DNA of 64,000 bases from positions 434,001 to 498,000 of the forward strand of contig NW_025766869.1 in NCBI RefSeq assembly GCF_003918875.1. Reading direction: 5' to 3'. Below the pieces are notes generated by a model that ran no database searches, was not told where the DNA came from, and worked only from the letters and a program-made list of their open reading frames with translations. The DNA comes from Haliotis rubra. Taxonomy: Eukaryota. The position numbers and the translations under genes are program-made. Of the stretch, positions 3,101-32,201 are shown piece after piece (positions within the stretch are counted from its first letter, which is position 1; each line of letters begins with the position of its first letter).

Positions 3101-6100
3101 TGTAAAACAAATTCGTAACGTTGAAAAGATTATTGTAATGAGTTCAATAAATGATGAAACTGGCTGAAAATTGGCGAATTCTTAACAAAACTTTACACCA
3201 AAACGCAGCTGTTTACATGCACGATACTAGTATTTGCATATGCTTTTCAACATTTTGATGCATAATTCTCGTGCAGTTCACCTGCATAAGGTTTGCATTT
3301 GGTTCCCACAAGTTAGTGGAAAAATTCATCTTCGATGTAACCACATGTATATACATAACATATAGTGAGTGCTTTAAGTGAGTCTAAACTTTTGATGGGT
3401 AGTATACTTTACTACAATGAAACACTGTTGTGTCATACTCTAATGTTGCGTCGACTGTACGGGTGTCTCGAAGTAAAAGCATGGCCCTTATATATTCCTT
3501 TTAAGTGATCATTTTGCGGATGAATGGATCCTAGAAAAAACCCAAGTATACTTCGAAGACAACTTCGATACAATATTGTTTGTCTGCATACTGACTTAAC
3601 CAAAACCCTAAGGGTTAGAAAATGTTTGATTTCAGAGTGGAACTAAGTTGAATTCTGTCAAATGTATCCCCTCTGAAAACCGCTATTCAATATAACAAAG
3701 GTAGCTAGTAACAAGCTACTGAGCATCTTTAAATATTATCTCCTGTCTTTCAGTAGTGTCGATATTTATTTTTTCAATCCTGAATCGTTATGCACAGGCC
3801 TGCATGTGAAACACTCGAGGCGATCTCACTGATCTTTACAGTGGGGCGGTGGGGTAGCCTAGTTGTCAAAGCGTTCGCTTGTCACGCCAAAGACGTGAGT
3901 TCCATTCCCCACATGAGGACAATGTGTAAAACCTATTTCTGGTGTCCCCCGCCGTGATATTGCTGGAGTATTGCTAAAAACAGCGTAAAACTAAACCCAC
4001 TCACTCACTCACTCACGCCTGTATTTTTGGCTTGGCAAATCTGTGGAAGGGAAATGGTCAAGTGTCCGTTGCTGACAGATATGAAAGCATGGTGTTGTGG
4101 TGTTGAAATATTATTGTGTGATAGGACATGATTTACCGCTGACTGTGCCTCCAACCATCTTGGCGGTGTCGGTCACGAGGGTTCCCAGGAAATCTTTGCC
4201 AATGCCTGCAGCAAATGGTATGAAGTCCTTTCCTGTTTGTATGACAGCACCACCGACGGCTTCAATGTCATTCTTGATGTCGATCAGAAGATTCCTTTCT
4301 GAGCTACGAGTTGACAAGAAATATTTGCTTTAGGATTCTGTTTGTTTTCTTTTCCTTTTCGTTGTTGATGGGTCTATTTATAATCTCTCAGAGTATGACA
4401 ACAGTATCAAGTGAAGGTGTATATTTGTATATTTTAGATGATAAGTAATTAGGTTATATCAGTCGTCGATATCTTTAAAGGTACTATTTCACACCACACT
4501 TCTCTAAAAATATATAATGCATTTCTCTCACTAATACTATCAGCCCTCAGAGAAACTACCATATGATATATTCCAAACAAATGTGTATTTAGATTACAAT
4601 ATTAAATTAAAAAGTTCGGATGACTATAATTATAATAATTTATATGATCTAATGCTGTGATTGTTAGGGTTCCTTTCTGAATGAACTCTCTAAGTGTATG
4701 AACAATATCCAGTGGGGGACTACGGGTGTGAATTGTGTGTGCTTATATCTGAAATACCGTAATTAAGTTTCATCAGGCAGTGACATTGACAACTGCTCCC
4801 TTAGTAGAACATACACTTGGTACAATACTCTTAAAGGTGAATCAGAATAAGTATAGGATATTGTGTATACTTACAGATCTCTCTTGCCATGGAATAATTT
4901 CGATAGAGCTTGCCCAAGAAGATCTGAAACAGAAGTGAAGGGGTTTTCGTGAAAATTGTTTTTGCCATAGTTTTCAATAAATTATCTTCGTTGTGGTGTT
5001 CACGTTAGAGTTAGTACTGTCTAAATTCCGGTGTTAGTGATGATAAAGGGATTACAGTGGTTATTATCATTGCATTGTTTATATTGCTGCTGTCTTGCAT
5101 ATATTACCATTGTTGTTATGCTACGGAAAGGCCAGGCCATATGGAACTAATATACTATAGTGGAACAATGTCGAGTCGGACTCGTATGTGTCGAATGTAG
5201 GGTTATCTCGAAGTGAAAGCTTGATCCCTGTACATTCCTTTTAATGACTAATTTGAGGCTCTGTCGAACCTACAAGACTTCAAAGTATTTACGTACGTAC
5301 CTTCACCTTTGATACAATATTGTTTGACTAAACCGAACCCGAAGGATTTGTTAGAATATGTTTAATTTCAGAATGGAATTAAGTTAAATTCTGTCAAATG
5401 TAGTCCCTATCCACCATGGACACCACTATTCCATATAACAAAACTAATGGAACAGTTTGATCCACTGGATATTGTAACTAAACGTGGATACCATAGATCT
5501 GAACAATGTCAGAAAATGTCACAAGCTACTGAGAATCTTTAAGTATTATCTCCTGTCTTTCAGTATTGTCAATATATACCTTATCACTCTAAATCGCTAT
5601 GCATAGGCCTGCATGAGAAACACTCGAGGCGATCTCACTGATCCTAGGACGAGAGCGGTGGGGTATCCTCGTTGTCAAAGCTGGGTACAATGTGTGAAGC
5701 TTTTTCCTGGATTCCCCCGCCGAGATATTGCTGGAATATTGCTAAAAGCGGTGTAAAACTAAACTTACTCAAACCTGTGTTTCTGGGTTGGTTTGTGTGT
5801 GGAAGGGAAAGGGCCATGTGTCCGTTGGTGACAGATATGAAAGCATGGTGTTGTGGTGTTGAAATAATATTGTGTGATTGGACATGATTTACCGCTGACT
5901 GTGCCTCCAACCATCTTGGCAGTGTCGTTCATGAGGGTTCCCAGGAGATCTTTGCCAATGCCTGCAGCAAATGGTACGAAGTCCTTTCCTGTTTCTTTGA
6001 AAGCACCACCGATGGTTTGCAAGTCATCCTTGATGTCGGTCAGAAGATTCCTTTCTGAGCTACGAGTTGATAAAATATTTGCTTTAGGATTCTGTTTGTT

Positions 6101-9100
6101 TTATTGTTTTGTTTATATATGGAAGAATCTCTCACAGTATGTCAGCAGTATCCAGTGATGATTAAGGAATGTCAGGTGTATGCTTGGATATCTGACATGA
6201 AAAGTTAAGTTATATCAATCGTCGATATTTGTAAATGCTTCCAAAGTAGACCCTATGCTGGATAGAATCAGGAGGTTGTAAATCAGGAGATTTAAAGGTG
6301 GATCATGATAAGTATGGGGTGTTGGGTAAACTTACAGATCTCTCTTGCCATGAAAAAGGTTTGCAAGAGCCTGACCAAGAAGATCTGAAACCAAGGAAAT
6401 CGCGGCAGTTGAAATGTGCTTTATCGTTAACTATTTTATTGTTACCATTAGCCGATACAATCAATGAAAGCGTTTCTTGTAATGTTCAGAGAGTATTTGG
6501 AAAAAGTGGAATCCTAAGTTTGTGAATTCAAAGAAAACCTCAAAGGAATTGCTTGGACGTTTGCAATCTTATAAAAACAACGACTGACGTCAATGAATTT
6601 ACGGTCTTAAACGACTTCTTATCGTCTTTGAGTGCATTTCATCGAATCTTAAAATATTTCCGTCAACGTATTTTTTACCACTCAGTGTTCCTCCAACCAT
6701 CTTGAGAGTGTCGTTCTTAAGAGTTCCCAGAAGATCATTGCCAATGCCTGCAGCAAATGGTACGAAGTCCTTTCCTGTCTGTTGGACAGCACCACCGATG
6801 GTTTGCAGGTCGTTCTTGATGTCAGTCAAGATATCCCTTTCTGATCTACGATTTGAAACAAAATGTATTTAATCTGGCATCTCTAAGTACGTGAATGATC
6901 TCAAGTGGGGACTAGGGGTGTGAATTGTATGTGCGTATATCTGAAATGCAGTAATTAAGATTTATTAGACATTGACATCAGCTCAGTTAATAGAACATAC
7001 ACTTGGCACTTAAAGGTGGATCACAATAAGCATCAGATATTGTGTATACTTACAGATCTCTCTTGCCATTGAATAATTTCGATAGAGCTTGCCCAAGAAG
7101 ATCTGAAAAGAAGTGGAGGAGTTTTCGTGAAATGTTTTTTATTCATTAGATTTTCAAAAATTATCTTCGTTGTGGTGTTCACGTTAATGTCAGTATTATC
7201 TACATTTCGGTGTTAGTGATGATAAAGGAATTAATGTGGTTATTATAATGGCATTGTCTATATTGCTGCTGTCTTGCATGTTTTACCATTGTTGTTATAC
7301 TCCTAAAAGGCGGCGTCTTATGGAACTAATATCCTATAGTGGAACACTGTTGAGTCGGACTCGTATGTGTCGATTGTACGGTTGTCTCGAAGTAAATGTT
7401 TGATCCCTGTACATTCCTTTTAGTTAACAGGCAGCTTGGGTTATCCGGGGTAATAATGGCCTTGATTGTTAGCGCTATGAGCATACCTAGTGTGGAGTTT
7501 GGCGCTATATAAATGGACACATTATTATTATTATTATTATTAATATTTTGAGGCTCTGTCGAACTTACAAGACTTCGAAGTATTTACGTACGTACCTTCA
7601 ACTTTGATACGATATTGTTTGACTGCATATTGGCTAAACCGAACACTAAGGATTTGTTAGAATATGTTTAATTTCAGAATGGAACTAAGTTAAATTCTGT
7701 CAAATTTAGTCATTATTCACACTGGACACCACTATTCCATAAAACAAAACTAATGGAACAGTTTGATCCACTGGATATTGTAAGAAAACGTGGATACCAT
7801 AGATCTGAACAATGTCAGAAACTGTTCTTATCTTTCCCCAACGGCGGCACCCGTCACAAGCTACTGAGAATCGTTATGTATTATCTCCTGTCTTTCAGTA
7901 TTGTCAATATTTACTTTTTCACTCTGAATCGGTATGCAGAGTCCTGCATGTGAAACACTCGAGGTAATCTCACTGGCACTACGAGGACACCGGTAGGGTA
8001 GCCTAATGGTCAAAGCGTTCGCTCGTTACGCCGAAGACCCGGGTTCGATTCCCACACGGGTAAAATGTGTGAAGCTCATTTCTGGTGTCTCCCATCGTGA
8101 TATTGCTGGAGTATTGCTAAACGCGGCGTAATACTAAACTCACTCACTCACGCCTCTATATCCGGGTTGGTAAATCTCCGGAAGTGAAATGGCCATATGT
8201 CCGTTGGTGACAGATATGAAAGCATGGTGTTGTGGTGTTGAAATAATATTGTATTATTGGACATGATTTACCGCTGACTGTGCCTCCAACCATCTTGGCA
8301 GTGTCGTTCATGAGGGTTCCCAGGAGATCTTTGCCAATGCCTGCAGCAAATGGCACGAAGTCCTTTCCTGTTTCTTTGAAAGCCCCGAGGATGGTCTGCA
8401 GGTCATTCTTGATGTCGGTCAGAAGATTCCTTTCTGAGCTACGAGTTGACAAGAAATATTTGCTTTGGGATTCTGTTTGTTTTGTTTTGTTTTATGTTGT
8501 TGTTGGGTTTGTTTATAATCTCTCAGAGTATGACAACAGTATCAAGTGAAGGTGTATGTTGGTATATTTTAGATGATAAGTAATTAGGTTATATCAGTCG
8601 TCGATATCTTTAAAGACACTATTTCACACCACACTTCTCTAAAAATATATAATGCATTTCTCTCACTAATACTATCAGCCCTCAGGGAAGCTACCATATA
8701 AATTATTCAAAACAAATGCGTATTTAGATTAGATATTAAATTAAAAAGTTCGAATGACTATAATGATAATAATTTAAATGAGCTGATGCTGTGTTTGTTA
8801 GGGTTCCTTTCTGAATGATCTCTCTAAGCATGTGAACAGTATCCAGTGGGGCACTACGGGTGTGAATTGTGTGTGCTCATATCTGAAATACCGTAATTAA
8901 TTTTCATCAGACAGTGACATTGACAACTGCTCACTTAGTAGAAGGTACACTTGGTGCAATACTCTTAAAGATGAATCACAATAAGTATAGGATATTGTGT
9001 ATACTTACAGGTCTCTCTTGCCATGGAATAATTTTGAAAGAGCTTGCCCAAGAAGATCTGAAACAAAAGTGGAAGGGGTTTCGTGAAAATTGTTTTCATA

Positions 9101-12100
9101 AATTATCTTCGTTGTGGTGTACAAGGTAGTGTTAGTGTTATCTACTTTCCGTTGTTAGTGATGATAAAGGGAGTAATGTAGCTATTATAATTGCATTGTT
9201 TATATTGCTGCTGTCTTGCATATATTACCATTGTTATTATGTTGCTAAACGGTTGGGTCATATGGAACTACTTTACTACAGTGAAACACCGATGTGTCGG
9301 ACTCTAATGTTGTGTCGACCGCGTGTTTGTCTCGAAGTACAAGTATGGCCCTTGTATATTCCTTTTTAGTGATGATTTAGCGGATGTGTGGATCCTAGAA
9401 TAACTCGAAGTATTTACCTACGTACCTTCAACCTCGATACAATATCGTTTGATTGCATATTGACTTAACCACATCCTAAGGATTTGTTAGAATATGTTTA
9501 ATTTTAGAGTGATACTAAGTTGAATTATGTCAAATGGATACACTCTGGACGCAAATATTCCATATAACAAAGCTAGCTAGACTCATGCTACTGAACATCT
9601 GTAAGTATTATCTCCTGTCTTTCAGTAGTGTCGATATTTACTGTTCCACTCTGTATTTCCGGGTTGGTAAATGTGTGGAAGGGAAAATGACCATTTGTCC
9701 GTTGGTGACAGATATCAGATGTTGTAGTGCTGAAATAATACTGTGTGATTGGACATGATTTACCGCTGACTGTGCCTCCAACCATCTTAACAGTGTCGTT
9801 CATGAGGGTTCCCAGGAGATCTTTGCCAATGCCTGCAGCAAATGGCACGAAGTCCTTTCCTGTTTCTTTGAAAGCCCCGCCGATGGTCTGCAGGTCATTC
9901 TTGATGTCGGTCAGAAGATTCCTTTCTGAGCTACGAGTTGACAAGAAATATTTGCTTTGGGATTCTGTTTGTTTTGTTTTGTTTTATGTTGTTGTTGGGT
10001 TAATTCATCAATCTCTCAGAGTATGACAACAGTATCAAGTGAAGGTGTATGTTGGTATAGTTTAGATGATAAGTAATTAGGTTATATCAGTCGTCGATAT
10101 CTTTAAAGACACTATTTCACACCACACTTCTCTAAAAATATATAATGCATTTCTCTCACTAATACTATCAGCCCTCAGGGAAGCTACCATATAAATTATT
10201 CAAAACAAATGCGTATTTAGATTAGATATTAAATTCAAAAGTTCGAATGACTATAATGATAATAATTTATATGATCTGATGCTGTGTTTGTTAGGGTTCC
10301 TTTCTGAATGATCTCTCTAAGCATGTGAACAGTATCCAGTGGGGCACTACGGGTGTGAATTGTGTGTGCTCATATCTGAAATACCGTAATTAATTTTCAT
10401 CAGACAGTGACATTGACAACTGCTCACTTAGTAGAAGGTACACTTGGTACAATACTCTTAAAGGTGAAACAGAATAAGTATAGGATATTGTGTATACTTA
10501 CAGGTCTCTCTTGCCATGGAATAATTTTGAAAGAGCTTGCCCAAGAAGATCTGAAACAAAAGTGGAAGGGGTTTCCGTGAAAATTGTTGTTTCATTATGT
10601 TTTCATAAATTATCTTCGTCGTGGTGTACAAGGTAGTGTTAGTATTATCTACTTTCCGGTGTTAGCGATGATAAAGGGATTAATGTGGTGTTTATATTGC
10701 TGCTGTCTTGCATATATCACCATTGTTATTATGTTGCTAAACGGCTGGGTCATATGGAACTACTTTACTACAGTGAAACACCGATGTGTCGGACTCTAAT
10801 GTTGTGTCGACCGCGCGTTTGTCTCGAAGTACAAGTATGGCCCTTGTTTATTCGTTTTTAGTGATGATTTAGCGGATGTGTGGATCCTAGAATAACTCGA
10901 AGTATTTACCTACGTACCTTCAACCTCGATACAATATTGTTTGATTGCATATTGACTTAACCACATCCTAAGGATTTGTTAGAATATGTTTAATTTTAGA
11001 GTGGAACTAAGTTGAATTATGTCAAATGGATACACTCTGGACGCAAATATTCCATATAACAAAGCTAGCTAGACCCATGCTACTGAACATCTTTAAGTAT
11101 TATCTCCTGTCTTTCAGTAGTGTCGATATTTACTGTTCCACTCTGAATCGTCCTGCATGTAAAACATTCGTGGCGATCTCACTGGTCCTTACGGGGGAAC
11201 GGCGGGGTGTAAGTGGTCGCTCGTCACGCCGAAGATCTGGGTTCGATTCCCCACATGGGTACAATGTGTAAAACGTATTTATTGTGCTCCCCGCCATGAT
11301 ATTGCTGGAGTATTGCTAAAACTAAACTCACTCACTCGCTCACTCACGCCTGTATTTCCGGGTTGGTAAATGTGTGGAAGGGAAAATGACCTTGTGTCCG
11401 TTGGTGACAGATATCAGATGTTGTAGTGCTGAAATAATACTGTGTGATTGGACATGATTTACCGCTGACTGTGCCTCCAACCATCTTAACAGTGTCGTTC
11501 ATGAGGGTTCCCAGGAGATCTTTGCCAATGCCTGCAGCAAATGGTACGAAGTCCTTTCCTGTTTCTTTGAAAGCACCACCGATGGTTTGCAAGTCATCCT
11601 TGATGTCGGTCAGAAGATTCCTTTCTGAGCTACGAGTTGATAAAAATATTTGCTTTAGGATTCTGTTTGTTTTATTGTTTTGTTTATATATGGAAGAATC
11701 TCTCACAGTATGTCAGCAGTATCCAATGAGGCTTAAGGAATGTCAGGTGTATGCTTGGATATCTGACATGAAAAGTTAAGTTATATCAATCGTCGATATT
11801 TGTAAATGCTTCCAAAGTAGACCCTATGCTGGATAGAATCAGGAGGTTGTAAGCCCAGAGGATTAAAGGTGGATCATGATAAGTATGGGATGTTGGGTAA
11901 ACTTACAGATCTCTCTTGCCATGAAACAGGTTTGCTAGAGCCTGACCAAGAAGATCTGAAACCGAAATGAATCACTGTAAATGTTAAACACCATTATCTT
12001 ACATAACAAACTTAAGAAACAGCTTCATCTTTGATCAATGGAGAACGCGTTGACTAAACGTGGAAATCATACATATTGTTACGATCTTTGGCATCAACGC

Positions 12101-15100
12101 TTCAGTACAATTTGTGATATATTAGCAAACAAGTGTAATAAAATATATTTGTGAAATGACGGACTTCCTGATGAAAAGCATCAGTGATTGTTTGTTCTTG
12201 GAAACCACACAACGCAGAGTTACAGGATCCATAAATAATCAAGTTTGCACCACACCACCAAGTGACTGAACTCGCTGTCAGCATCGATTGGCATATGCAG
12301 ACAAGCATCACCAAAGGAGCGAACCTGACCACGCAAGTTTGTTATTCACGTCGTACAACAAGGACAGGTTATTGTGAACCATTTCTAACAAGGATCTTCA
12401 ATGTTAGCATCTATGTAAACCCGGGACATACAACACATTTTTGCTGAAGTTAAAACTGCTTTGGTATTCGCTGCACATGCTCATTTTGATAATGAAACTT
12501 TTGACGCTTACATGGACGTTTGAATCATACTGCGTCTCTAGGTGCATTTTGTTTTCGTGGCATGTGAAATGTTTCCGTCAACGTATGTGTTTTACCAGTA
12601 AGTGTTCCTCCAACCATCTTGAGAGTGTCATTCTGAATAGTTCCCAGAAGATCTTTGCCGATGCCAGCAGCAAATGGTACGAAGTCCTTTCCTGTCTGTT
12701 GGACAGCACCACCGATGGTTTGCAGATCGTTCTTGATGTCCGTCAGGATGTCCCTTTCTGAGCTACGAGTTAAAGCAATATATATCTGGCCTTGTGTTTC
12801 CTTAGGTTCTTTCTCTTTTAATAGTAAAGGACAAGGGTAGTAGTACAACTAACATGCGTTGAGTACCTATTCTATCAGACATTGATTTGGTAACTGCTCC
12901 CTGTCCTGGGCAGACCATACATTTGGACACTAAAGTGTGGATCAGAATAAGTACCGCATTCTGTGTCATTCTTGATGTCGGTCAGAAGATTCCTTTCTGA
13001 GCTACGAGTTGATAAAAATATTTGCTTTAGGATTCTGTTTGTTTTATTGTTTTGTTTATATATGGAAGAATATCTCACAGTATGTCAGCAGTATCCAGTG
13101 GTGCTTAAGGAATGTCAGGTGTATGCTTGGATATCTGACATGAAAAGTTAACTTATATCAATCGTCGATATTAGTAAATGCTTCCAAAGTAGACCCTACA
13201 CTGGATAGAATCGGGAGGTTGTAGACCCGGAGTGAGTGAGTGAGTTTGGTTTTACGCCGCTTTTAGCAATATTCCAGCAATATCACGGCGGGGGACACCA
13301 GAAATGGGCTTAACACATTGTACCCATGTGGGGAATCGAACCCGGATCTCTGGCATGACGAGCGAACGCCTTAACCACTAGGCTTCCCCACCGCCCCTTG
13401 TAGCCCGGAGGATTAAAGGTGGATCGTGATAAGTATGGGATGTTTGGTAAACTTACAGATCTCTCTTGCCATGAAACAGGTTTGCAAGAGCCTGCCCAAG
13501 AAGATCTGAAACAAAAATGAACTGATGCAAAATAAAACAAGGTTTATTGTTAACATTTATGTTGTTCACGTTTATCTGTTATAACAACTACACTAGAGAT
13601 TACATAAGGTTTCTTGCGTATTTGTTACTGTGTAAATAACAAAAACAGTAATTCTACAAAATTCAGGGAATACAAAATATATTAAATAGAAATACAAAGT
13701 GACTGGTGCATTTTGTTGTCATTTGGCGTCATTTTCATATTTTATATGGTTCAGTCTTTGTTGTCTACTTTTCATTACTTTTGGGATAGATTCGAGTAGG
13801 CACATTTCGACGAAAATTCAAAACACGTCCTAAGGATCCTGGTCGAAAGTCGTTACAATATTCAAGGCCATGGAAAACTATCAAAAACAACCTTGCTATG
13901 TTCTGGTATTATGTATTTGTTCTGTGGTGTCTGTTCCTATATATTATTTATGATTTATGACACGATTTTGTCACTAACATTCATATGATCATTTTAATGA
14001 GTGAGCGTTAATAACATAATGTATTGTGCTGTTGTGGTGAAACTTCACTCAAATATTTGTGTTACCAGTGATTGTTCCTCCGACCATCTTGAGTGTGTCG
14101 TTCTCAAGAGTTCCCAGCAGATCTTTGCCAATGCCTGTAGCAAATGGTACGAAGTCCTTCCCTGTCTGTTTGATGGCACCACCAATAGTTTCCAAATCGT
14201 CCTTGATGCCGTTCAGGACATCCCTTTCTGTGCTGTGTCAAAAATGTACAACTGTACTTTGCTTTTCTTAAAAAGGTACTTTGTGGATTGCAACATTTAC
14301 ACCAATACGCATTTATGCTAGTGGATTGATGGCCAAATAGAAGTAACTTGGATTTCTGTCTGACATCAATCTTTTGAGCAACTTCCCAAATATATTTACA
14401 TGCGAAGTAATATTTCTTCATATATCATTGGAAATACGTTTTAGGCGTTGTGCGGCTGAAATGTTGAGTAATATGCTGTATATCAAACATTTCAACTGTT
14501 CCCAAATTAGCACCTATATCTGATGCAGTTAGAGGTGTGGAAACATGCATGTTATGTGATAGGGTGGATGATAATCTTAAGTGATAGACTACAGTCTGTA
14601 CATACACCGTATCTCTCTTGCCATTATGGAACAGTTTAGAAAGGGCCTGTCCAAGAAGATCTGCAAAAGAAATGAGTGAGTGAGTGAGTTGAGATTTACG
14701 CCGCACTCAGCAATATTCCAGCTATATGGCGGCGGTCTGTAAATATTCGAGTCTGGACCAGACAATCCAGTGATCAACAGCATGGGCATCGATCTGCGCA
14801 ATTGGGAACCAATGACATGTGTCAACCAAGTCAGCGAGACTGACCACCCGATCCCGTTAGTCGCCTCTTACGACAAGCATAGTTGCCTTTTGTGGCAAGC
14901 ATGGGTTGCTGAAGACCTATTCTACCCCTGATCTTCCAGGGTCCCAAAAGAAAAGAAATGCATGCAGTGAGTGCTGGCACTGAAATGAGTGAGTGAGTAA
15001 GTGAGTATGGTTTTAAGCCGGTTTTAGCAATATTCCAGCAATATCACGGCGGGGGACACCAGAAATGGGCATCACACATTGTACCCATGTGGGGATTCGA

Positions 15101-18100
15101 ACCCGGGTCTTCGGCGTGACGAGCGGACGCTTTAACCACTAGGCTACCACACCGCCCCGAAATTTATGTTGAAATTCATATTGTCGTGTGTGTAGAGTTC
15201 AGCTCAAGTATCATCTGTCGAGTGTTAAATATGAAGTGCTTATATGTCCTTAGTTGTAATCATAAGATTCATGTGCAGTGGTTTCTGCATTACCACTGTG
15301 GTATCACTACTGACATTGAAAAAGTACTGCTTACATTCCTACGCGGTGCTCAGAATGTGGTTGCAGTTATTACATTTAGAGGGTGGTGCTTACATATGTT
15401 TACGGTAAGGTTGAAGTAGTACTTATGTTTTTGTAACAGAGCTTAAAATACCTCTCTGGTGCTTACAGTGAGACTGCAGTGCTTACATTTATGTCGCAGT
15501 TTTTAAATATCACTGTGGTTCTTGTATTACTGGGTAACAGTACTTAATGAATGGCATTCATAAGTGTTACACGTAAGGAAGAGGGTTTTATGGTTGTCAG
15601 CTTCTTTATCATGAGGAACACAACGTTTCGGAGTATATCCTTACTCCTTACGTAATAATGCTTTGGCACCTTACTGTGCTTATATTGATGTTGATGATCT
15701 TACGATAACTGGGTTGGCACCTTACTGTGCTTATATTGATGTTGATGAGCTTACGATAACTGGGTAGGGCTTAAGTGTTACTATTATGCTTACATTTAAG
15801 TTACACTACCTACATTTTCGTTGCAGTGCTTACATTTACGTAAACGTTCTTGGCGGTGCCTGCTGTGAGGTGGGTGTAATTAAATATCTGCAGTAGTGCT
15901 TAAATACCCCAGTCGTGATTATCGCAAGTATGCAGTGCTTATATCTTCGTAAAAGTGTTTAAAAACCTTCACTTTGCTTACAGTGTCATAATAACGTTTA
16001 AATAACCCTGTGGTTTTCATCTTAGGCGAACGGTATTTACATTTACGCAGTAGTGCTTTAGTACTCTTACTATGCTTACAGTGAATATGCTGTGCTTACA
16101 TGTACGTAGTACTGGTTCAGTTTTCTGAATGTGCTTACATTTAAGTTGCAGTGCTACATTTAGGTAGTAGTGCTTACATACCTTTATGGTGCCTGTAGAG
16201 GTTGCCTCGTCACTATATGGCTGGAATAATGCCGATGTAACATAAAGCCCAACTCAACTGTAGAGGTTGTTGACATGACATGTGTAGTAACACTTTAAAA
16301 CCCTTGTGGTGCTTACAAAACGCATTGCTGATTATGCGTTTGTGCGCTCCTTGTGCTGTCGTAATGCTTAACGGATGGAGGCATGTGCATGTCTTACCCG
16401 AGATAGTGCCCTCGGTTATCATTTTGAGAGTGTCGTTCTTAAGGGTTTCGAGAAGGTCTTTGCCTACGCCGGCAGCAAATGGTACAAAGTCTTTTCCTGT
16501 CTCTTTCTTAGCTCCTCCGGTGGTTTGCAGGTCGTCCTTGAGACCGGACAAGGCATCCCTTTCTGTGCTGTGGGTTGATAAAATTATATATAACAATACT
16601 GTAATTTTATTTTTGACACAAGAAAATATTTGTGGATCCCAATATGTACACAGTTACGTTTTAAGGAGGATGAGTTGAGGGAATTGTAACAAGTTGCTGA
16701 GCTTTCTAAGCGACATCGAACCTTTGAACAAATCCCTAAGTTAGTCATGTGTTTTTTTCTTAAAGACTTTTTATGACGATGCGAACATATTCATTTTAGG
16801 GTGAGTTTGACTTTGAAATTTGTATTTTATCGTATATCGAACTTTTGAAACCACCTCAGTTGACGTATACCTAGGACCATCGGAAGGGTGGAAAGTCTAA
16901 TTCAAGTGACACAATATTGCCAGTACATACACCGTATCTCTCTTGCCAGTATGGAACAGTTTTGAAATAGCCTGTCCAAGAAGATCTGGAACAGAAAGAA
17001 CTGTTATGCGTGATGTGCTTTTGCTCTCAAATTTATGTTCAAATATATTGTCATGTATATAGTGTATATGTAAGGTTGTGCTTAATGTGCCTTGGATGTG
17101 CTTAATGTTGGTAGTGTACCTAACTGTTGTATTCCCGTGGAAGTGTTTAAATACCACCATGTGCTTATATCAAGGTTGCATTGCTTACATTTATCGTTGT
17201 ATCGCTTAAACACTTTGTTGATGTTTACATTGACGTTAGGGTGTAATTCATAAATACCATTTTGGTGCTTATATTGAGATCCAGTGCTTACATTTGAACA
17301 GTACGACTAAAATACCATGTTTGTGCTTAAAGTGATGTTACAGTGCTTACATTTACATGGTGTTGTTTAAATTCCCTACTAGTGTTTACATTAAGGTTGG
17401 AGTGCCTTATCTTACACAGTGCTTAGTGCTTAGATAGTATTGCCATTCAGGTGCCTGCAGAAGATAATGTGTTATCATTTTAGTGCTTATTTTGCCGTTG
17501 TGGTGCTTAGATAGTTTCATTCATGTGGTGGTGTGTAGTCCTGTGGATAGAGCTCATGTCACAATCAGTTGTGAACTTTAGCAACATTGGGCGCGGAGAG
17601 TCTTTGGATGGGTGACAGTGTTTGGCAGCTTGACTCCTGAGAGTTTCTAGGACTTCAGTCCTGCCCTACAACGAAGCACATGCGATACACGTGATCTCAC
17701 CTTAGGCAAGTGAGTTTGTTCAAATTTGCCTCTGTTCATCCAGCAGAAAATGGGTACCCGGTGAAATAAGTCGTGAGACTATAACCTTCTAGCGCCTAAC
17801 AGGCAGAATGAGTTATCCGGGTTAATAATGATCAGATTGTGCGCTTTGAGCAGGATACCTAGCATAGAAAAGGCGCTTTATAAATATCCTTATTCTCATT
17901 ATCATGTATGTGTCGTACCGGAGATTGTGTTCCCGACCATTTTGAGAGTGTCGTTCTTTAGGGTTCCGAGAAGGTCTTTGCCAACGGTCTGGGCATATGG
18001 TACGAAGTCCTTTCCTGTCTGTTTGATAGCTCCTCCGATGGTTTGGAGGTCATCCTTGAGGCCGGTCAAGACATCCTGTCCGAGGGCGACACTCAGCGTC

Positions 18101-18129
18101 AAGGCCAGTACCACTATGAAAACCTTCAT
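145..18129 (-). CDS. Secreted multi-copy peptide precursor (gene 1): signal peptide plus at least 12 tandem 72-aa modules, each encoded by an exon A/exon B pair; 3' end lies beyond the window start
   Basis: Exons in transcription order: A1 18129-17919 (MKVFIVVLALTLSVALG-QDVLTG..TIS), B1 16985-16931, A2 16567-16398, B2 14660-14606, A3 14232-14066, B3 13505-13457, A4 12762-12596, B4 11955-11907, A5 11629-11463, B5 10550-10502, A6 9930-9764, B6 9057-9009, A7 8438-8272, B7 7102-7054, A8 6845-6679, B8 6384-6336, A9 6059-5893, B9 4923-4875, A10 4303-4137, B10 2771-2735, A11 2477-2311, B11 561-513, A12 311-145. All have AG/GT borders. A is phase 2->1 and B phase 1->2; the splice gives 2590 nt (863 codons) with no stop. 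Module consensus: (L)SERDILTDIKNDLQTIGGAxKxTGKDFVPFAAGIGKDLLGTLKNDTLKMVGGTxS-DLLGQALSKLFHGKRD. Confidence 0.88.
836..1175 (-). mobile_element. tRNA-headed V-domain-like SINE (second copy ~27525-27812)
   Basis: tagtggttagagcgtccgcc head, then aaagacgttaaatatggtgcttgttgg..ggctcggagtcagtataatgtgtctgagtgg..gctagcactataaaa; two similar copies. Family assignment is from recall of molluscan V-SINEs. Confidence 0.7.
1979..2033 (-). pseudogene. Truncated exon A remnant (3' part only)
   Basis: LLGTLGNDTLKMVGGTIT with a G|gtgag donor but no acceptor; fused to the intron sequence cggcagttgaaatgtgc also seen at ~6403, just before exon B8. Confidence 0.8.
12955..13001 (-). pseudogene. Truncated exon A remnant (5' part only)
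   Basis: Intact acceptor plus SERNLLTDIKND, then fused to sequence matching the intron that normally follows exon B (gtggatcagaataagta). Confidence 0.8.
13233..13397 (-). mobile_element. tRNA-derived SINE family 1 (~170 bp), representative copy with TSD
   Basis: A/B-box head (ggggcggtggggtagcctagtggttaa..gggttcgattccc), tail gctggaatattgctaaaagcggcgtaaaac(tcac)n, TSD ttgtag(a)cccggag. Other copies at approx. 3843-4016, 5648-5770, 7984-8151, 11193-11347, 14986-15158, 25690-25830, 27217-27389, 31891-32042, 35107-35263, 36265-36405, 44520-44670, 47234-47402, 49514-49665, 51252-51418, 58709-58878, 63791-63919; many have 7-14 bp TSDs. Confidence 0.9.
17527..17900 (+). mobile_element. CORE-like SINE with L2-type 3' tail (5'-truncated copy at ~7423-7545)
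   Basis: ccttaggcaagtga..gcctc..aaatgggtacc core; tail tgtgcgctttgag..aaaggcgctttataaat. The 7423 copy is absent from the paralogous intron at ~5243. Confidence 0.65.
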
Positions 18130-25508: not shown

Positions 25509-28500
25509 TTACAGGGAACCAGCAAGCTGTTTGACAATGGTTTCACCAGCGTTTGCAGCAGTCTGGGCCATGCTGCTGAGGGCGGGCTTGGCGTTTTGTA
25601 GAGTCTGACCTGTAAAAGTGTAATAATGGAATCAGAAATAGGGTAAAATGTTCCTGGTGTATAACCTCAAATATACATCGTGGGTGTGATGGGCAATGGG
25701 GTAGCCTGGACCTGGGTTCGATTCCTCACATGGGTACAATGTGTGAAGCCCATGTCTGGTATCCCCGGTTGCGATATTGCTGGAATATTGCTGGAATATT
25801 GCTAAAGCGGTAAAACCGTATTCACTCACAATTGTGGTTGTGAAAGGTGATTAAATGCAATGCTTATTCATAACGTTGTGTTTTAATGAATCAAGGTTGG
25901 TCGTTAGGTTGCCACGACTTTCCTAAGCAGTGTCGGGATCATCTGAATTGTCAGCGTCAGGCAAACATTTTTGAGTCTTTTGTGAATGGCGGATGCTACT
26001 GGCAGCGCAGGACATGCCTACTTCTATCGCAAACACCTATGTCATCACGCTTTTTAAGTGATCCATTCATATAATTTTCTCAGCTATTTTTGCCTGTAGG
26101 CCAAACGGAGTCTGTTTCTGAGGATAGACAAGACTTGGTATACTTTTGCACTGACGCTCTATATCTAATACGACCCGATTGTGATTCTTCATCAGGAAAA
26201 TCACCATTTAACCTGAGGGCGTTTCTCCTCCAGTAATCTGGCACCACGTCACTGTAGTGAGTGAGTTTAGTTTTATGCCTTTATGCATATCCAAGACATG
26301 GCCCGTGAAGATCCGGTTTAGCATGAACCTTCAGTAACCCATGCTTGTCGCAAGAGGCGACTAACGGGATCGGGTGGTCAGGATCGCTGACTTGGTTGAC
26401 ACATGTCATCATATCCCAATTGCGCAGATCGATTGCTCATGCTGTTGATCACTGGATTGTCTGGTCCAGGCTCGATTATTTACAGACCGCCGCCATATAG
26501 CTGGAATATTGCTGAGCGCGGCGTAAAACTAAACTCACTCACATATCCACGACATAGGCTATCAACCTGGTCGTTGTAGTATTGCGAACGGAGTTGGACT
26601 AAACTGGTGCCAGGATGGGGTAACTCACTGAAGATGTCCTTCATAGCGTCTTTCATGGCGTTGATGGCGTTGGTGCCGTGTTGGGTGAGCTGACCGATCT
26701 GGGAGGAGAGAGCGACGACGTGGGGCTTCAGCTGTTCCCCGAGCTGGGAGATGGAGTCCTTGGCAGCGCTCAGGAGGCCATTAGCCGCGACGCTGATAGC
26801 AGATCCTGCTCCGTGGACCATCTGCAAACAAAACGTACATGAACCAGACACTGGGCGAGGAATCAACGTTCCTGGAGAGACTTTGGGGTCAAGCAAGAGG
26901 TATGTTCCCCATAGCACCAACTGTGCACCCCTTCGAGCTGAAAACCGTTCGGTTTACACATTTAAGCAAGGAGTGGGCACGCCAATGAGAACCAACCGTG
27001 CGAGCCTTCTTGCTGAAAACTGTTCGGTTTACATATTTGAGCAAGACACCGGCACGCCAATGAGCACCAACTTTGCACCCCTTCGTGCTAAACAATGTTA
27101 CACATTTAAGCAAGATGGAGACTTGTCCATGGGCTATGATTATGCTCGCCTTCTTCCTCATCATTGTTTCTGTACGTATACAATTATTTGCTTGAATTGG
27201 CAAAACCAAAACTAAGCGAGTGAGTGAGTGTGTTTAGTCTTACGCCGCTTTACGCAGTATTCCAGCAATATCACGGCGGGGGACACCAGAAATGGGCTTC
27301 ACACACTGTACCCATGTGGGGAATCGAACCCGGGTCTTCGTTGTGACGAGCGAACGTTTTAACCACTAGGTTACCGCTCCCAACGCCCCAAAACTAAGCA
27401 ATTTAGCCAAGAAGGTTCACTTAAACTTCATTTACGCGCCTAAACAATAAATAATAGTTTGAAATGATGTTGTTTTGATCGAATGATGCATAGGCTATCG
27501 ATAAGAGTCATCAGGAAAGGGTGAGGTGAGGTGAAATTGGGTTTAACGTGGTGCTTGAGAATATTTTGCTCATATGACGATGTGCATGCGTGTGTATGTG
27601 TATGTGCGGCTGCTTGTACTAGCCCAGACATAAGCTGGTTTTATAGTGCTAGCCACTGAGATTCCATGCCGCAGTGAAGCAAGAATACCCCACTCAGACA
27701 CTTTATACTGACTCCGAGCCGACCAGTCCTTGTTGTACTCATTAATGCCGAGCGCCCGGCAGGGACCAACACGTACCATATTTTAACGTCTTTTGGTATG
27801 ACGCGGCCGGGCATCAGGAAAGGGATTAAAATAGTACCCATAACCGAACCCCAGCCTCCGAGATAATGGGCGAACGTTACATCCACTTAGCTACCACTTA
27901 GCTACCCTTTCTTTGGGCTAACACTAGGACATGCGTCCTGACAAACCCGTGATGATTCTCTATAGAATTAGTCTTCAGCAACCCATGCTTGTCGTAAAAG
28001 GCGACTAACGGGATCGGGTGGTCAGACTCCCTGACTTGGTTGACACATGTGATCGTACCCCAACTGCGTAGATCGATGCTCGTGATGTCAATCACTGGAT
28101 TGTCTGACCAAGACTCGATTATTTACAGACCGACACCATGTAGCTAGAATATTGCGGTCCGGTCTCGTGCACGCACCCAAACATGAAAACACATACACGC
28201 ACGTCGCTGTGAACGTTGTCACTTCAACCACGTTTCCATCTCATACCTGTGAAACAGAATCAACGGCTGGCTTGAAGGCAGCTGCGATGGCGCTCCCCAG
28301 GGAGCTGAGGGTGTCGGTGACGACGTTACGCTTCTTCAAACTGAACACCGACTTCACGACTTTGGTTGTGTCTCTCTCCAGGGCTTGTAGGAACTCTTTA
28401 GACAGAGATGTGTGCTTGGCTGGGAACAGAAACCAGCAGGTCATCTACATAAAACAATAATGGTAAGTGCCAAGGAAGGTCAAAGCGTTTATCATGTAAC

Positions 28501-30864
28501 GGCCAGTGTCATCGACACGATTAATTCATTTAAGTTATAGTTAATCAATAATTATAATTAAATTTGGTATCAGATATGACCCCGACAAATCGGAAGTGAA
28601 AAGATTATTTTTCATTTGGAAATGGTTAAACCTTTATTAAACCATCCCTGTTATTCATGGAGCTGCCTCCTTTGTCTAGTCTGCACAGAAAGCGGAAGTG
28701 GTAGTGGTTCGATATTCAACCGCGTCATACCACGATATCGGGTACTTGATGTTACCCTGCCTGGCACATTTAGGGGATAAACGGACTGGTCAGCTTGGGT
28801 CAGTTTTGTGTGTCTGAGTAAGGTATCCTCGTCAATCAATCAGTCAAAATACTCAGTATATACCCGGCAACAGATTGCTGCTCAAAAGCGCTTTAGACCC
28901 GTGAAGATCCGTGTTAGAATTGATCTTCAGTAACCCATATGCTTGTCTTAAGAGGCAACTAACTACACAGATCGGATGGTCAAGCTCACTGACTTGGTTA
29001 ACACATGTCATCGTATCCCAATTGCGTAGATCGATGCTCATGCTGTTAAACACTGGATTGTCTGTTCTAGTTTATTTACAGAATTATTTATTGCTGGAAT
29101 ACTGCTGAGTGCGGCGTAAAACTAAACTCACTCACTCACTCAAAATCGCTTTGAATCATGGGAACTTATTAGTCCTTGAACAGCCGGGGTTTGAGCAGTG
29201 ATTTAAAAGTGTTTAGTTCATTTTTTTTAGTTCTCGTGGTAAATTATTCCCTGATGTTTTCATGTCCAGATGATTTTGCACAGGACTTGGATGTTAGAAG
29301 AAGATTTCGACCCCCTTACCGTGTTCGTAAAGGTTCATAGCCCTGAATGTAGACTGGGGCCTGGTATCTCAGTAAGCTGGCACTACAATACCGGCATTAG
29401 TTGGGGCTAGCAGGCACATACGCAAGCACACATACGCACGCACACATGTGCAGGCACGTCACTATATACATTGAGTAATCTTGACAGCCACCCGTTAACA
29501 TGACCTCTTTTCTCATTCTTTGTTTCTACCCGTGAAGGTCCGAGTTAGAATATTGATCTTCAGTAACCCATGCTTGTCGTAAGAGGCGACTAACGGGATC
29601 GGGTGGTCAGGCTTGCTGACTTGGTTGACACACGTCATCGGTTCCCAATTGCGCAGATCGATGCTCATGCTGTTGATGACTGGATTGTCTGGTCCAGACT
29701 CGATTATTTACAGACCGCCGCCATATAGCTTGAATATTGCTGAGTGCGGCGTAAAACTAAACTCACTCACTAACTCTTTTGTTTCATTTCAGGCATAGCA
29801 TGCCATTAGGGCGTGGAGTCATCAACTGCTATACGACCTTGACATATACCTCCTGGATTCAATCACGCTCAGATTTCACTCTGGCGCCTACAAGAAAATA
29901 TGAAACCTACCAAGAAGAGCCTCGACCTTTTTGAGAGCATCCTCGGGGTGAATCTGAAGGTTCTTCAGCTGGGTGTAGATGGTCTGGATCTCTGTGAACA
30001 CCTCGTCGATGACGTCAGAGAACTGGGAGGTGCCGACGTTGAGGAGGTTCTTCAGCTTGGATTCCAGAGTCTGCATTTGAGTCATGATCGCGCTGAAATG
30101 AAGTGAAGAAGTAAATATTTTAATGAATCTTCAAGGTATCTGGATCGGAATTGGTCCCCAACACTCTGACCTTGTCATGAGAAGGGGCCAGACAGGAACG
30201 GGTTGACTGTCACTGTGATTTGGTTGACGTCCTTGTACCTCGAATCGATATCAACCCCTGCCTTGTTCTGGGTTAGTTTCATTAATAAAATAGACCTGAC
30301 TATGAGTAAAATATAAATTTCAATAACCAGTTATCTGTATCGACGCCACTATTTCGCGTTCCTTTTTGTCTGGTGTGTCTTGGTAAAGGAGGGGGAGAGA
30401 AGGGAAGAGAGGAGAGGATGCAGACATAATTTAGAAATCATTCCCCCATGTCTAACACGACACAGTCAACTGTACACAGGCCACTTATTCACTCAGTATC
30501 TGTTGAAATTCTTCTTGTGTAGATTCAATACATTTGGATGAATGTATATCCTGATATATCAAAATACGTGTTTCATTATCAGTGCATATTTTGTATAGTT
30601 ATGCATTTATTACAAATGATAGCAATAATAACAGATTTGTTTAGTTTTTGACTTACGGCATGTCTCTTTGATGATGAAACAGTGATGCAAACGCCTTGCC
30701 AATCAGATCTGGAATCACAGACAACAGAATATAACCGATCCCGACGTTGGAAACACGTGTTTACACCTGGATTTACACCTGGACAAAAACGTTAAGAACC
30801 GATATTTATTTATCTATACTTTTACTGGACGTTCGTGTACGAGTTTACATTGATTCACTTTAAG

Positions 30865-30900
<36 letters not shown>

Positions 30901-31816
30901 AGCCACAGCATCATCACCATCATCATCATAGAGTCACAGTATCATCATCATCATCAAGCCACAACATCATCACCATCATCATCATANNNNNNNNNNNNNN
31001 NNNNNNNNNNNNNNNNNNNNNNNNNNNNNNNNNNNNNNNNNNNNNNNNNNNNNNNNNNNNNNNNNNNNNNNNNNNNNNNNNNNNNNNNNNNNNNNNNNNN
31101 NNNNNNNNNNNNNNNNNNNNNNNNNNNNNNNNNNNNNNNNNNNNNNNNNNNNNNNNNNNNNNCATCACCATAATCATCATCATAGAGTCACAGTATCATA
31201 ATCATCATAATCATCATCATAGAGTCACAGTATCATAATCATCATCATCACCATCATCATCATCACAGCATCATCACCATATCATCACAGCATCATCACC
31301 ATATCATCACAGCATCATCACCATAATCATCNNNNNNNNNNNNNNNNNNNNNNNNNNNNNNNNNNNNNNNNNNNNNNNNNNNNNNNNNNNNNNNNNNNNN
31401 NNNNNNNNNNNNNNNNNNNNNNNNNNNNNNNNNNNNNNNNNNNNNNNNNNNNNNNNNNNNNNGCTAACATACTCTCAGCGCATGTTCATTCTCAGCCCTA
31501 TCTTTTCATTCCCATCCCCCTGTATACAACCCAATATGCATGTGAAGTGCTGGAACGTCAACAGCCCAGTCACACACAAACTAAGATGAACTTTGTTTTT
31601 CTTACCAGACAGAGTGCCGCTGACCATCTTGACGGTGTCATTTTTCAGAGTCCCAAGCAGATCCTTGCCAATGTTAGCAGCAAAGGGAACGAAGTCCGTG
31701 CCAGTCTGTTTTACCGCACCGCCGATAGTCTGTAGGGAGTCCTTGATGTTATCAAGAAGGTTGCCTCCGCTGGCAGCACTGAAGGTGAGGACGAGGACAA
31801 GCACGAGGACCTTCAT
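25509..31816 (-). CDS. Secreted 303-aa paralog (gene 2): single A+B module followed by an amphipathic, apolipoprotein-like helical region
   Basis: Exons 31816-31606 (MKVLVLVLVLTFSAASGGNLLDNIKDSLQTIGG..GTLS; 211 nt, same as gene 1 A1), 30708-30657 (DLIGKAFASLFHHQRDM), 30092-29911 (AIMTQMQTLESK..VEALL), 28419-28247 (AKHTSLSKEF..KKRNVV..SVSQ), 26821-26629 (MVHGAGSA..KDIF), 25609-25509 (SQTLQNAKP..AGSL*). Phases 1,2,1,0,1 are all compatible; 912 nt open. Confidence 0.85.
26300..26541 (+). mobile_element. SINE family 2 (~240 bp, no tRNA head, Meta/MESC-like core), representative copy
   Basis: Starts gcccgtgaagatccgg, core gcttgtcg(t/c)aagaggcgactaa, 3' tail shared with family 1, 14-bp TSD catatcca(a/c)gacat. 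Other copies at approx. 14673-14944(-), 20910-21050, 23745-23940(-), 27945-28155, 28896-29138, 29528-29774, 33645-33790(-), 46640-46970(-), 50805-51040. Confidence 0.85.
30867..31462. repeat. (CAT)n-rich low-complexity tract with assembly gaps 30987-31162 and 31332-31462, inside the intron after gene 2's first coding exon
   Basis: ATC repeats flanking N runs. Confidence 0.95.
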
Positions 31817-32201
31817 GTCTGTTGAGAGATTCAGGACAATTTATTAAAAATATGAGCATATGTCATCATCAGAGGTAATCCAAGAAAACTGTGAGTTTGG
31901 TTTTATACCGCTTTTAGCAATATTCCAGCAATATCACAGCGGGGGGGGACACAGAAATCTACACATTGTACTCATGTAGGGAACCGAACCCGGGTCGTCA
32001 GAGTGACGAGCGAACGCTTTAACCACTAGGCTACTCCTCCGCTTAAATACTTGGAATGCTATTAATATGTACTGGACATAAAAGAAAATTACCCACCCTG
32101 ACTTATATTTAAGCTTAAATAGCGTGAAATAAAAGTATCAACCAGATTTTGGACTGAGGAGATTATTTTAACTTTAGTAAATTCCACTTTCCCTGATCCA
32201 A

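Follow-up and report, generated by a model that had tools for sequence, protein, structure and literature searches.

Structure of gene 2

The stretch of Haliotis rubra DNA analysed here (contig C1979:434001-498000, 64,000 nucleotides in full; hereafter the window) carries two neighbouring genes on its minus strand: gene 1 (LOC124281015), which extends left of the window, and gene 2, which was rebuilt from 31816 to 25509. Gene 2 comprises six exons, all of whose junctions are canonical (AG/GT), and its coding sequence of 912 nucleotides (nt) encodes 303 amino acids (aa), none of them cysteine. In both genes a first coding exon (part A) is followed by a short second exon (part B), and together these form an A+B module that gene 2 contains once. 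We consider it probable that gene 2 is a conserved gene for a secreted, Cys-free helical protein that keeps the single-copy ancestral layout, and that gene 1 is its amplified sister, in which a Gly was gained and exons 5-6 disappeared; on this view the basic site that closes B is old and has been weakened in gene 2 of H. rubra and its relative Haliotis asinina. The features of gene 2 are as follows, in window coordinates:

31606..31816, minus strand: exon 1 (module part A), 211 nt, from ATG to a final G followed by gtaaga, ending in phase 1
30709..31605, minus strand: intron 1, containing both assembly gaps, in a (CAT)n-type microsatellite
30657..30708, minus strand: exon 2 (module part B), 52 nt, phase 1 in, phase 2 out
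30665..30670, minus strand: Gln-Arg codons CAA AGA, at the position of the gene 1 Lys-Arg
29911..30092, minus strand: exon 3, helical tail, 182 nt
28247..28419, minus strand: exon 4, helical tail, 173 nt
26629..26821, minus strand: exon 5, 193 nt, the best-conserved exon across the family
25509..25609, minus strand: exon 6, 101 nt including the TAA stop

The product of exon 1 joins a hydrophobic, signal-like N-terminus, by inspection Met-Lys and then a Leu/Val-rich run over residues 1-17 that is kept in the orthologs, to a helix of ~53 aa, and exon 2 reads (D)LIGKAFASLFHHQRDM(P). A preliminary description, made from the letters of the window, had given gene 2 the orientation of gene 1, a 211-nt first exon of equal length and phase and a homologous exon B, and the rebuilt model reproduced all of these at exact coordinates. 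The same holds for the B exon with neither a Gly donor nor a dibasic pair in H. rubra (HHQRD) and for the tail of four Cys-free amphipathic exons.

The assembly gaps, at 30987-31162 and 31332-31462, both fall in intron 1 and touch no exon. Intron 1 of the orthologs is 465 nt long in Haliotis asinina and 544 nt in Haliotis rufescens with no exon inside, and the annotated proteins of these species join exon 1 straight to exon B, so that a hidden exon in the H. rubra intron is unlikely; the presumed continuity of the H. rubra gene across the gaps has synteny with these two species as its sole basis. Copies of short interspersed or other transposable elements (SINE/TE) lie in the introns of gene 2 at 26300-26540, 27100-28120, 28890-29140 and 29530-29780.

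Conservation and transcript evidence

All six exons of gene 2 recur in H. asinina and H. rufescens with identical length, ungapped and with canonical splice sites, at nucleotide identities per exon of 84-96% in H. asinina (L028) and 75-88% in H. rufescens (L029); exon 1 has the same length and 80-84% identity in the two species. The ratio of nonsynonymous to synonymous substitution rates (Ka/Ks) is 0.26 against H. asinina and 0.18 against H. rufescens, with little difference between the A+B part and the tail. The annotated 303-aa H. asinina ortholog (P0027) is collinear with our model, and gene 2 is single-module in four species, each with one match to the A profile, against 9-11 in gene 1. 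By these measures, gene 2 is an intact, selectively maintained gene. In H. rufescens, exon 6 (L029:14632-14732) carries an in-frame stop 18 codons before the stop of H. rubra and H. asinina; this earlier stop accounts for the 285-aa models in H. rufescens and Haliotis cracherodii.

Two null results weigh against our reading at this point and speak for the alternative that H. rubra gene 2 is silent or becoming a pseudogene, with the change from Lys-Arg (KR) to Gln-Arg (QR) at the end of B and the missing annotation as marks of relaxed function. Four RNA-type runs gave zero contig depth on exons 1-5 (the stretch checked, 25900-31850, left out exon 6), and H. rubra gene 2 is absent from the annotated proteins matched, among which four neighbouring family members are present. 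We nevertheless regard silencing as improbable, because the 303-codon frame is open with every splice site canonical, the Ka/Ks values of 0.18-0.26 include the tail, QR also occurs in H. asinina, whose annotation includes the full-length gene, and the gaps in intron 1 alone could account for a missed gene model. The RNA-type runs themselves are few, are represented by contigs only and come with tissue not given; they contain just 5-7% of the sampled words, and their depth is confined to the intronic SINE/TE copies. Support for the proposed exon joins of gene 2 comes from comparison between species rather than from transcripts, and a literature search by accession number returned no match.

The intronic SINE/TE copies of gene 2 have very high summed depth in the RNA-type runs, in two organisms.

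The amplified neighbour, gene 1

Within the window, gene 1 is made up of the following features:

17919..18129, minus strand: first coding exon, 211 nt, from ATG to a final G followed by gt, in the same phase as gene 2 exon 1
146..16993, minus strand: amplified region, 11 internal A exons alternating with B exons that end in Gly-Lys-Arg (GKR)

The first coding exon corresponds to residues 1-70 of the RefSeq protein P0031 with a 100% match and is 66% identical to that of gene 2 at the protein level. Exon B is likewise homologous, reading DLIGKAFASLFHHQRDM(P) in gene 2 and DLLGQALANLFHGKRDL in gene 1. Internal A exons are 167 nt long (170 nt for A2 by its canonical AG) and B exons 49 nt (HGKRDL), the first two being 55 nt (H[T/N]GKRDTV), and the A+B units consist of whole codons (167+49 = 216 nt; 170+55 and 167+55 in the first units). 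Every internal unit enters and leaves in phase 2, which bears out the earlier view of A+B as a symmetric phase-2/2 unit.

Homology between internal A exons and the first exon starts within a few bases of the acceptor, with 61-74% identity downstream. Internal A exons start with the third base of codon 15, nt 45 in the frame of the first exon and the boundary of the signal peptide; this start fits the two trailing bases of B, and the frame is thereby preserved. The preliminary description had proposed that a signal-peptide exon was converted into an internal exon. The start at the signal-peptide boundary agrees with that proposal, which stays a positional inference only, since upstream of the internal A acceptors we found no remnant of signal-peptide coding sequence (14-27% identity, the chance level).

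The 3' end of gene 1 lies left of the window. Its twelfth B exon (C1979:433115-433064) is 52 nt long and ends HFKRDTP, sharing with gene 2 exon B both the length and the final CC before gt. Two tail exons follow, one at C1979:432789-432616 homologous to gene 2 exon 3 (67% identity) and one at C1979:430253-430095 homologous to exon 4 (53% identity), and isoform X5 of LOC124281015 (P0031, 944 aa) joins modules, terminal B and both tail exons, its short last exon lying at C1979 ~428325-428264. Searches of 15 kb of the gene 1 3' region with tblastn and profile hidden Markov models gave no homolog of exon 5 or 6. Counterparts of gene 2 exons 3-6, anticipated by the preliminary description at the end of gene 1, thus exist for exons 3-4, with none for exons 5-6 in the profile search. 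The last exon was considered as an exon 5 homolog and rejected, as just its first 7 nt are shared and the alignment is no better than those of shuffles.

Taken with its orthologs in H. asinina, H. cracherodii and H. rufescens, gene 1 resembles gene 2 in its in-phase 211-nt first exon, its homologous B and its exons 3 and 4, and the two genes are adjacent on the same strand in three species. Gene 1 differs in having 12 A+B modules, a Gly before the internal KR and a last exon that is short and unrelated, and in lacking exons 5-6.

Further observations concern the modules of gene 1. Exon A8 (window 6680-6844) and its B are skipped in isoform X5, which has 11 modules against 12 genomic A exons, and among H. 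rufescens gene 1 isoforms the length difference is exactly 72 aa; it appears that the symmetric units behave as cassettes that can be skipped. An A-like fragment at window 1980-2033 (C1979:435980-436033), between modules 11 and 12, is 72% identical to exon 1 residues 53-70 and may correspond to the truncated module that stands as module 4 in H. asinina, H. rufescens and H. cracherodii. At the start of A2 (window 16560-16575), P0031 reads DTVHSTERD, which implies a start 6 nt upstream of the canonical AG used in our model, with no AG preceding it.

The tandem array and bivalve relatives

Contig C1979 carries nine six-exon paralogs in tandem on one strand, and gene 2 is one of them. Its exon 5 matches six further copies downstream on the same strand (E = 4e-14 to 2e-10, 48-57% identity; exon 6 up to 56%) and more copies on contigs C2479 and C898, while exon-by-exon mapping gave seven more complete six-exon single-module genes at C1979 ~415-336 kb. 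In each of these paralogs a single exon of 199-214 nt encodes signal and A and stops in phase 1, and there is a single B-like exon. This six-exon single-module layout matches RefSeq proteins (311-315 aa) of four abalone species, P0009 agrees with the model of array paralog g0, and profile matches to family proteins reach E = 1e-104 to 1e-135. Gene 2 has the family layout throughout, its signal and A sharing one exon that closes in phase 1, with a short B exon and four exons of tail behind it, and the family is an uncharacterised Haliotis family of secreted helical A-B-tail proteins without a Pfam model. The six-exon paralogs (e.g., H. rubra LOC124281009, P0009, 313 aa) thus share with gene 2 the layout, the phase-1 first exon, the Arg-Asp end of a B-like exon, the similarity in exon 5 and the array itself. 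They differ from it in an A part that is only 19-28% identical and mostly 4 codons shorter (199 nt; 214 nt in paralog gE) and in a B that mostly ends TRD or SRD.

Beyond Haliotis, a whole-library HMMER search with the A-exon profile confined true relatives to Mytilus galloprovincialis and Mizuhopecten yessoensis. The mussel protein LOC143069352 (P0007) has seven modules, and the scallop protein LOC110458036 (P0015) is multi-module with module ends in KR; the bivalve modules are ~30% identical to Haliotis A+B. The module-end KR of Mytilus aligns with the Haliotis Arg, and the pairwise alignment of the scallop protein stops before the module end. Like Haliotis A+B, the bivalve proteins have a signal peptide followed by helical modules of ~70-75 aa that end in KR; unlike it, they have 6-7 modules, no Gly before KR and, in the isoforms seen, no tail of the exon 3-6 type.

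Direction of change

In a maximum-likelihood tree of the exon 3+4 region, the gene 1 tails and gene 2 form a clade against all other paralogs (100/100), each of the two genes is monophyletic across species (98/94), and H. rubra pairs with H. asinina inside each gene. H. asinina and H. rufescens also have gene 2 followed by gene 1 on the same strand. The joint clade, the monophyly of each gene and the shared order together indicate that the duplication predates the split of H. rubra/asinina from H. rufescens/cracherodii. The earlier proposal that gene 1 arose by duplication of a gene 2-like gene is borne out by this clade and by the exon 3 and 4 homologs in the gene 1 tail. Several modules are orthologous across species, among them the first, the last and module 9 of H. 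rubra with module 9 of H. asinina, so the ancestor of these species would already have been multi-module in gene 1, with species-specific copies added later. Since every Haliotis outgroup paralog is single-module, the parsimonious reading is that amplification in gene 1 is derived. This is the direction given by the preliminary description, and with the seven array paralogs and others single-module it requires one event of amplification, against several of collapse.

The modules themselves give no such direction, which counts against our reading. Their tree is a polytomy that includes the module of gene 2 among those of gene 1, and the outgroup is very distant, on a branch of ~2.8 substitutions per site; keeping the gene 1 modules together costs a log-likelihood difference (delta lnL) of only 0.53, with an approximately unbiased test value (p-AU) of 0.038. 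Because this tree is unresolved, module sequences alone do not put gene 2 branching first. Concerted evolution could hide the history, and, with bivalve relatives that are multi-module, the deep ancestor of the family may have had one module or several.

In the reverse order of events, the ancestor of gene 1 and gene 2 would have been multi-module with GKR, and gene 2 would have collapsed by a deletion from the first A to the last B. The failure of the module tree to place gene 2 outside the gene 1 modules agrees with such a collapse, as do the multi-module relatives in mussel and scallop, and a collapse also predicts that gene 2 exon B should resemble the last B of gene 1, which it does (52 nt, Pro end, no Gly). 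We find this order highly improbable, since the other Haliotis paralogs are all single-module (seven in the array, and the P0016/P0045 and P0044 groups) with gene 1 and gene 2 nested among them, and gene 2 is single-module in 4/4 species. A collapse would further require amplification and then deletion, where the alternative requires amplification only, and no module remnant was seen in introns 1 or 2 of gene 2. We infer, on this balance, that a single-module layout preceded the amplified one.

The basic motif at the end of exon B

The codons at the end of B compare as follows:

Gene 2, H. rubra and H. asinina: CAT CAT CAA AGA GAC, HHQRD
Gene 2, H. rufescens: CAC ATT AAA AGG GAC, HIKRD
Gene 1 terminal B, H. 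rubra: CAC TTT AAG AGA GAT, HFKRD

HIKRD is also found in H. cracherodii gene 2, and in this species as in H. rufescens the B end reads HIKRDMP, dibasic without Gly. The terminal HFKRDTP of gene 1 recurs in H. asinina and H. cracherodii (three species in all), and GKR stands at every internal gene 1 module end in four species. Across the Haliotis paralogs, Arg followed by Asp/Glu is near-invariant (KR-Ala in the P0016 subgroup), and the residue before the motif Arg is K, T, S or Q. On the exon 3+4 tree, an ancestral KR needs one change and an ancestral QR two, and K to Q is a single A-to-C step on the gene 2 branch of H. rubra and H. asinina.

The presence of KR in the gene 1 terminal B, in two gene 2 orthologs and at bivalve module ends suggests that the Lys-Arg site is probably ancestral. 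The QR of H. rubra and H. asinina gene 2 would then probably be a secondary K-to-Q loss of the dibasic site, and the Gly alone is probably new in gene 1, as a one-codon insertion that separates its 55-nt B exons from the 52-nt form. It counts against our reading that the ancestral KR is inferred from four species and their paralogs. Two statements of the preliminary description need revision in this light. Where it spoke of a gain of GKR, KR without Gly already occurs in the gene 1 terminal B and in two gene 2 orthologs, and only the Gly is new; where it supposed a larger secreted protein as the ancestor, a basic site probably already lay between the A+B peptide and the tail, so that the ancestor was probably precursor-like rather than a plain larger secreted protein.

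Predicted protein properties and comparison systems

Gene 2 exons 3-6 encode no Cys and have a mean helical hydrophobic moment of 0.37, compared with 0.19 +/- 0.02 for shuffled sequences (z = 8.7), with a peak at 95-100 degrees. For whole-protein analyses, the H. asinina ortholog P0027 was used as a stand-in, and H. rubra gene 2 was searched exon by exon. In P0027 and P0009 the hydrophobic periodicity of the tail peaks at 98 degrees, equal to 3.67 residues per turn, the peak being broad. An AlphaFold2 model of P0027, built with 14 family sequences and of low confidence (predicted local distance difference test score, pLDDT, 50), predicts five long helices with a break at residues 84-87 (HHQRDTP), at the junction of B and exon 3.

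Among the predicted properties, the amphipathic periodicity, the all-helical model with its break at the motif and the sub-threshold apolipoprotein matches speak for our reading; the quality of the model, the lack of a fold match and apolipoprotein scores far under the cut-offs weigh against it. The AlphaFold2 model is poor overall (pLDDT 50, predicted template modelling score 0.42), and Foldseek against the PDB returned no fold match, the best being designed helical bundles at a template modelling score (TM) < 0.3. P0027 scores 23.4 bits against PF01442 (Apolipoprotein A1/A4/E; E = 6e-5), for which the cut-off is 90, and 18.8 bits against PF07464 (ApoLp-III), for which it is 36.3. Pfam searches with single exons and full orthologs gave only sub-threshold helical look-alikes, the ESM Atlas held no related cluster (own model pLDDT 0.49), and a match to the apoA-IV chain 9hx4_F (E = 0.004) was likewise sub-threshold. 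Gene 2 resembles the exchangeable apolipoproteins (PF01442, PF07464) in being Cys-free and predicted as secreted, in its predicted long amphipathic helices, whose broad periodicity peak lies near 3.67 residues per turn, and in a weak profile similarity of the tail; it differs in scores far under the curated cut-offs and in having no fold match.

Classical molluscan amidated neuropeptide precursors, of the FMRFamide, pedal peptide and myomodulin type, have a signal peptide and tandem units that end in Gly-Lys-Arg, each unit of 4-20 aa and as a rule contained, like its neighbours, in a single exon. Only gene 1 resembles such precursors, through its signal peptide and its GKR-ended tandem units, and it departs from them in units that are ~72 aa long, acidic, helical and spread over two exons, with a helical domain following. 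Gene 2 has one unit, with no Gly plus dibasic pair at its end, and so lacks these two features of an amidated multi-peptide precursor.

These comparisons bear on whether the basic motifs are cleavage signals at all. The products might instead be intact, long helical secreted proteins, with a role in lipid, mucus or surface binding, in which GKR or KR forms a linker at a helix break. Such an alternative gains from the predicted gene 1 peptides (69 aa, acidic, isoelectric point 4.4-5.0), which are unlike amidated neuropeptides or cationic antimicrobial peptides, from the TR, SR or QR found in place of KR in several paralogs, and from the weak apolipoprotein-like signals in the tail. Long acidic peptides of this kind are unusual for amidated signalling peptides, which leaves the alternative of no processing some probability. 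We consider it somewhat unlikely, as Gly-Lys-Arg is exact at every internal module end in four species, KR recurs at the ends of bivalve modules that are otherwise ~30% identical, and the motif falls in the predicted helix break.

Proposed history of the locus

Together, these results suggest a history in which gene 1 and gene 2 would be sisters, produced by a duplication before H. rubra/asinina separated from H. rufescens/cracherodii, with gene 2 retaining the ancestral single-module layout. In gene 1, an A exon without the signal peptide, together with B, would have formed a phase-2/2 symmetric unit that was copied in tandem to 12 modules, a Gly would have been added ahead of the pre-existing Lys-Arg, and tail exons 5-6 would have been lost. 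The basic motif that terminates B, in a predicted break between helices where B meets exon 3, is probably an ancient site of processing and would separate an N-terminal helical peptide of ~70 aa from a tail of ~215 aa that resembles exchangeable apolipoproteins in its helices. Convertases may cut this linker where it reads KR; in H. rubra and H. asinina, the change from KR to QR has probably weakened the site in gene 2.

Multi-copy peptide precursors usually have their origin reconstructed from end products alone, and here the steps would be legible at one locus: an acceptor at the signal-peptide boundary, a phase-symmetric unit, a Gly codon before Lys-Arg and the loss of tail exons. A single-copy sister, the amplified gene and single-copy outgroups stand in one array that is conserved in four abalone species. 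The locus also marks an unnamed molluscan protein family with bivalve members, and its value is evolutionary and hypothesis-forming. More tentatively, and as a possibility that we hold to be plausible without being probable, A+B (a helix of ~70 aa with a basic end) may be an old secreted module of vetigastropods and pteriomorph bivalves that was amplified into polyproteins more than once. Gene 2 and gene 1 would then form a before-and-after record of one such event, with the Gly insertion adding amidation and with the start of tail loss.

Other array members and repeats

Among the remaining members of the array, the paralogs at C1979:380053-375097 and 354411-348875 (L016, L018, L019) have identical exon 5 translations and BLAST statistics, which points to a recent segmental duplication of ~25 kb. 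In the paralog at C1979:365651-359603 (L017, L018), exon 5 matches in two separated pieces only; this copy may be disrupted, and the aberrant 259-aa H. rubra model P0046 (LOC124281010) may belong here. Three or four more distant family members lie at C2479:462-486 kb and C898:68-71 kb (L022-L027), and the C898 copy may be an uncollapsed haplotype, since its statistics are identical to those of one copy on C2479. Elsewhere in the window, at 39000-40400 on the plus strand, a tandem array of ~38-40-codon units is open in several frames and is satellite-like, not gene-like.

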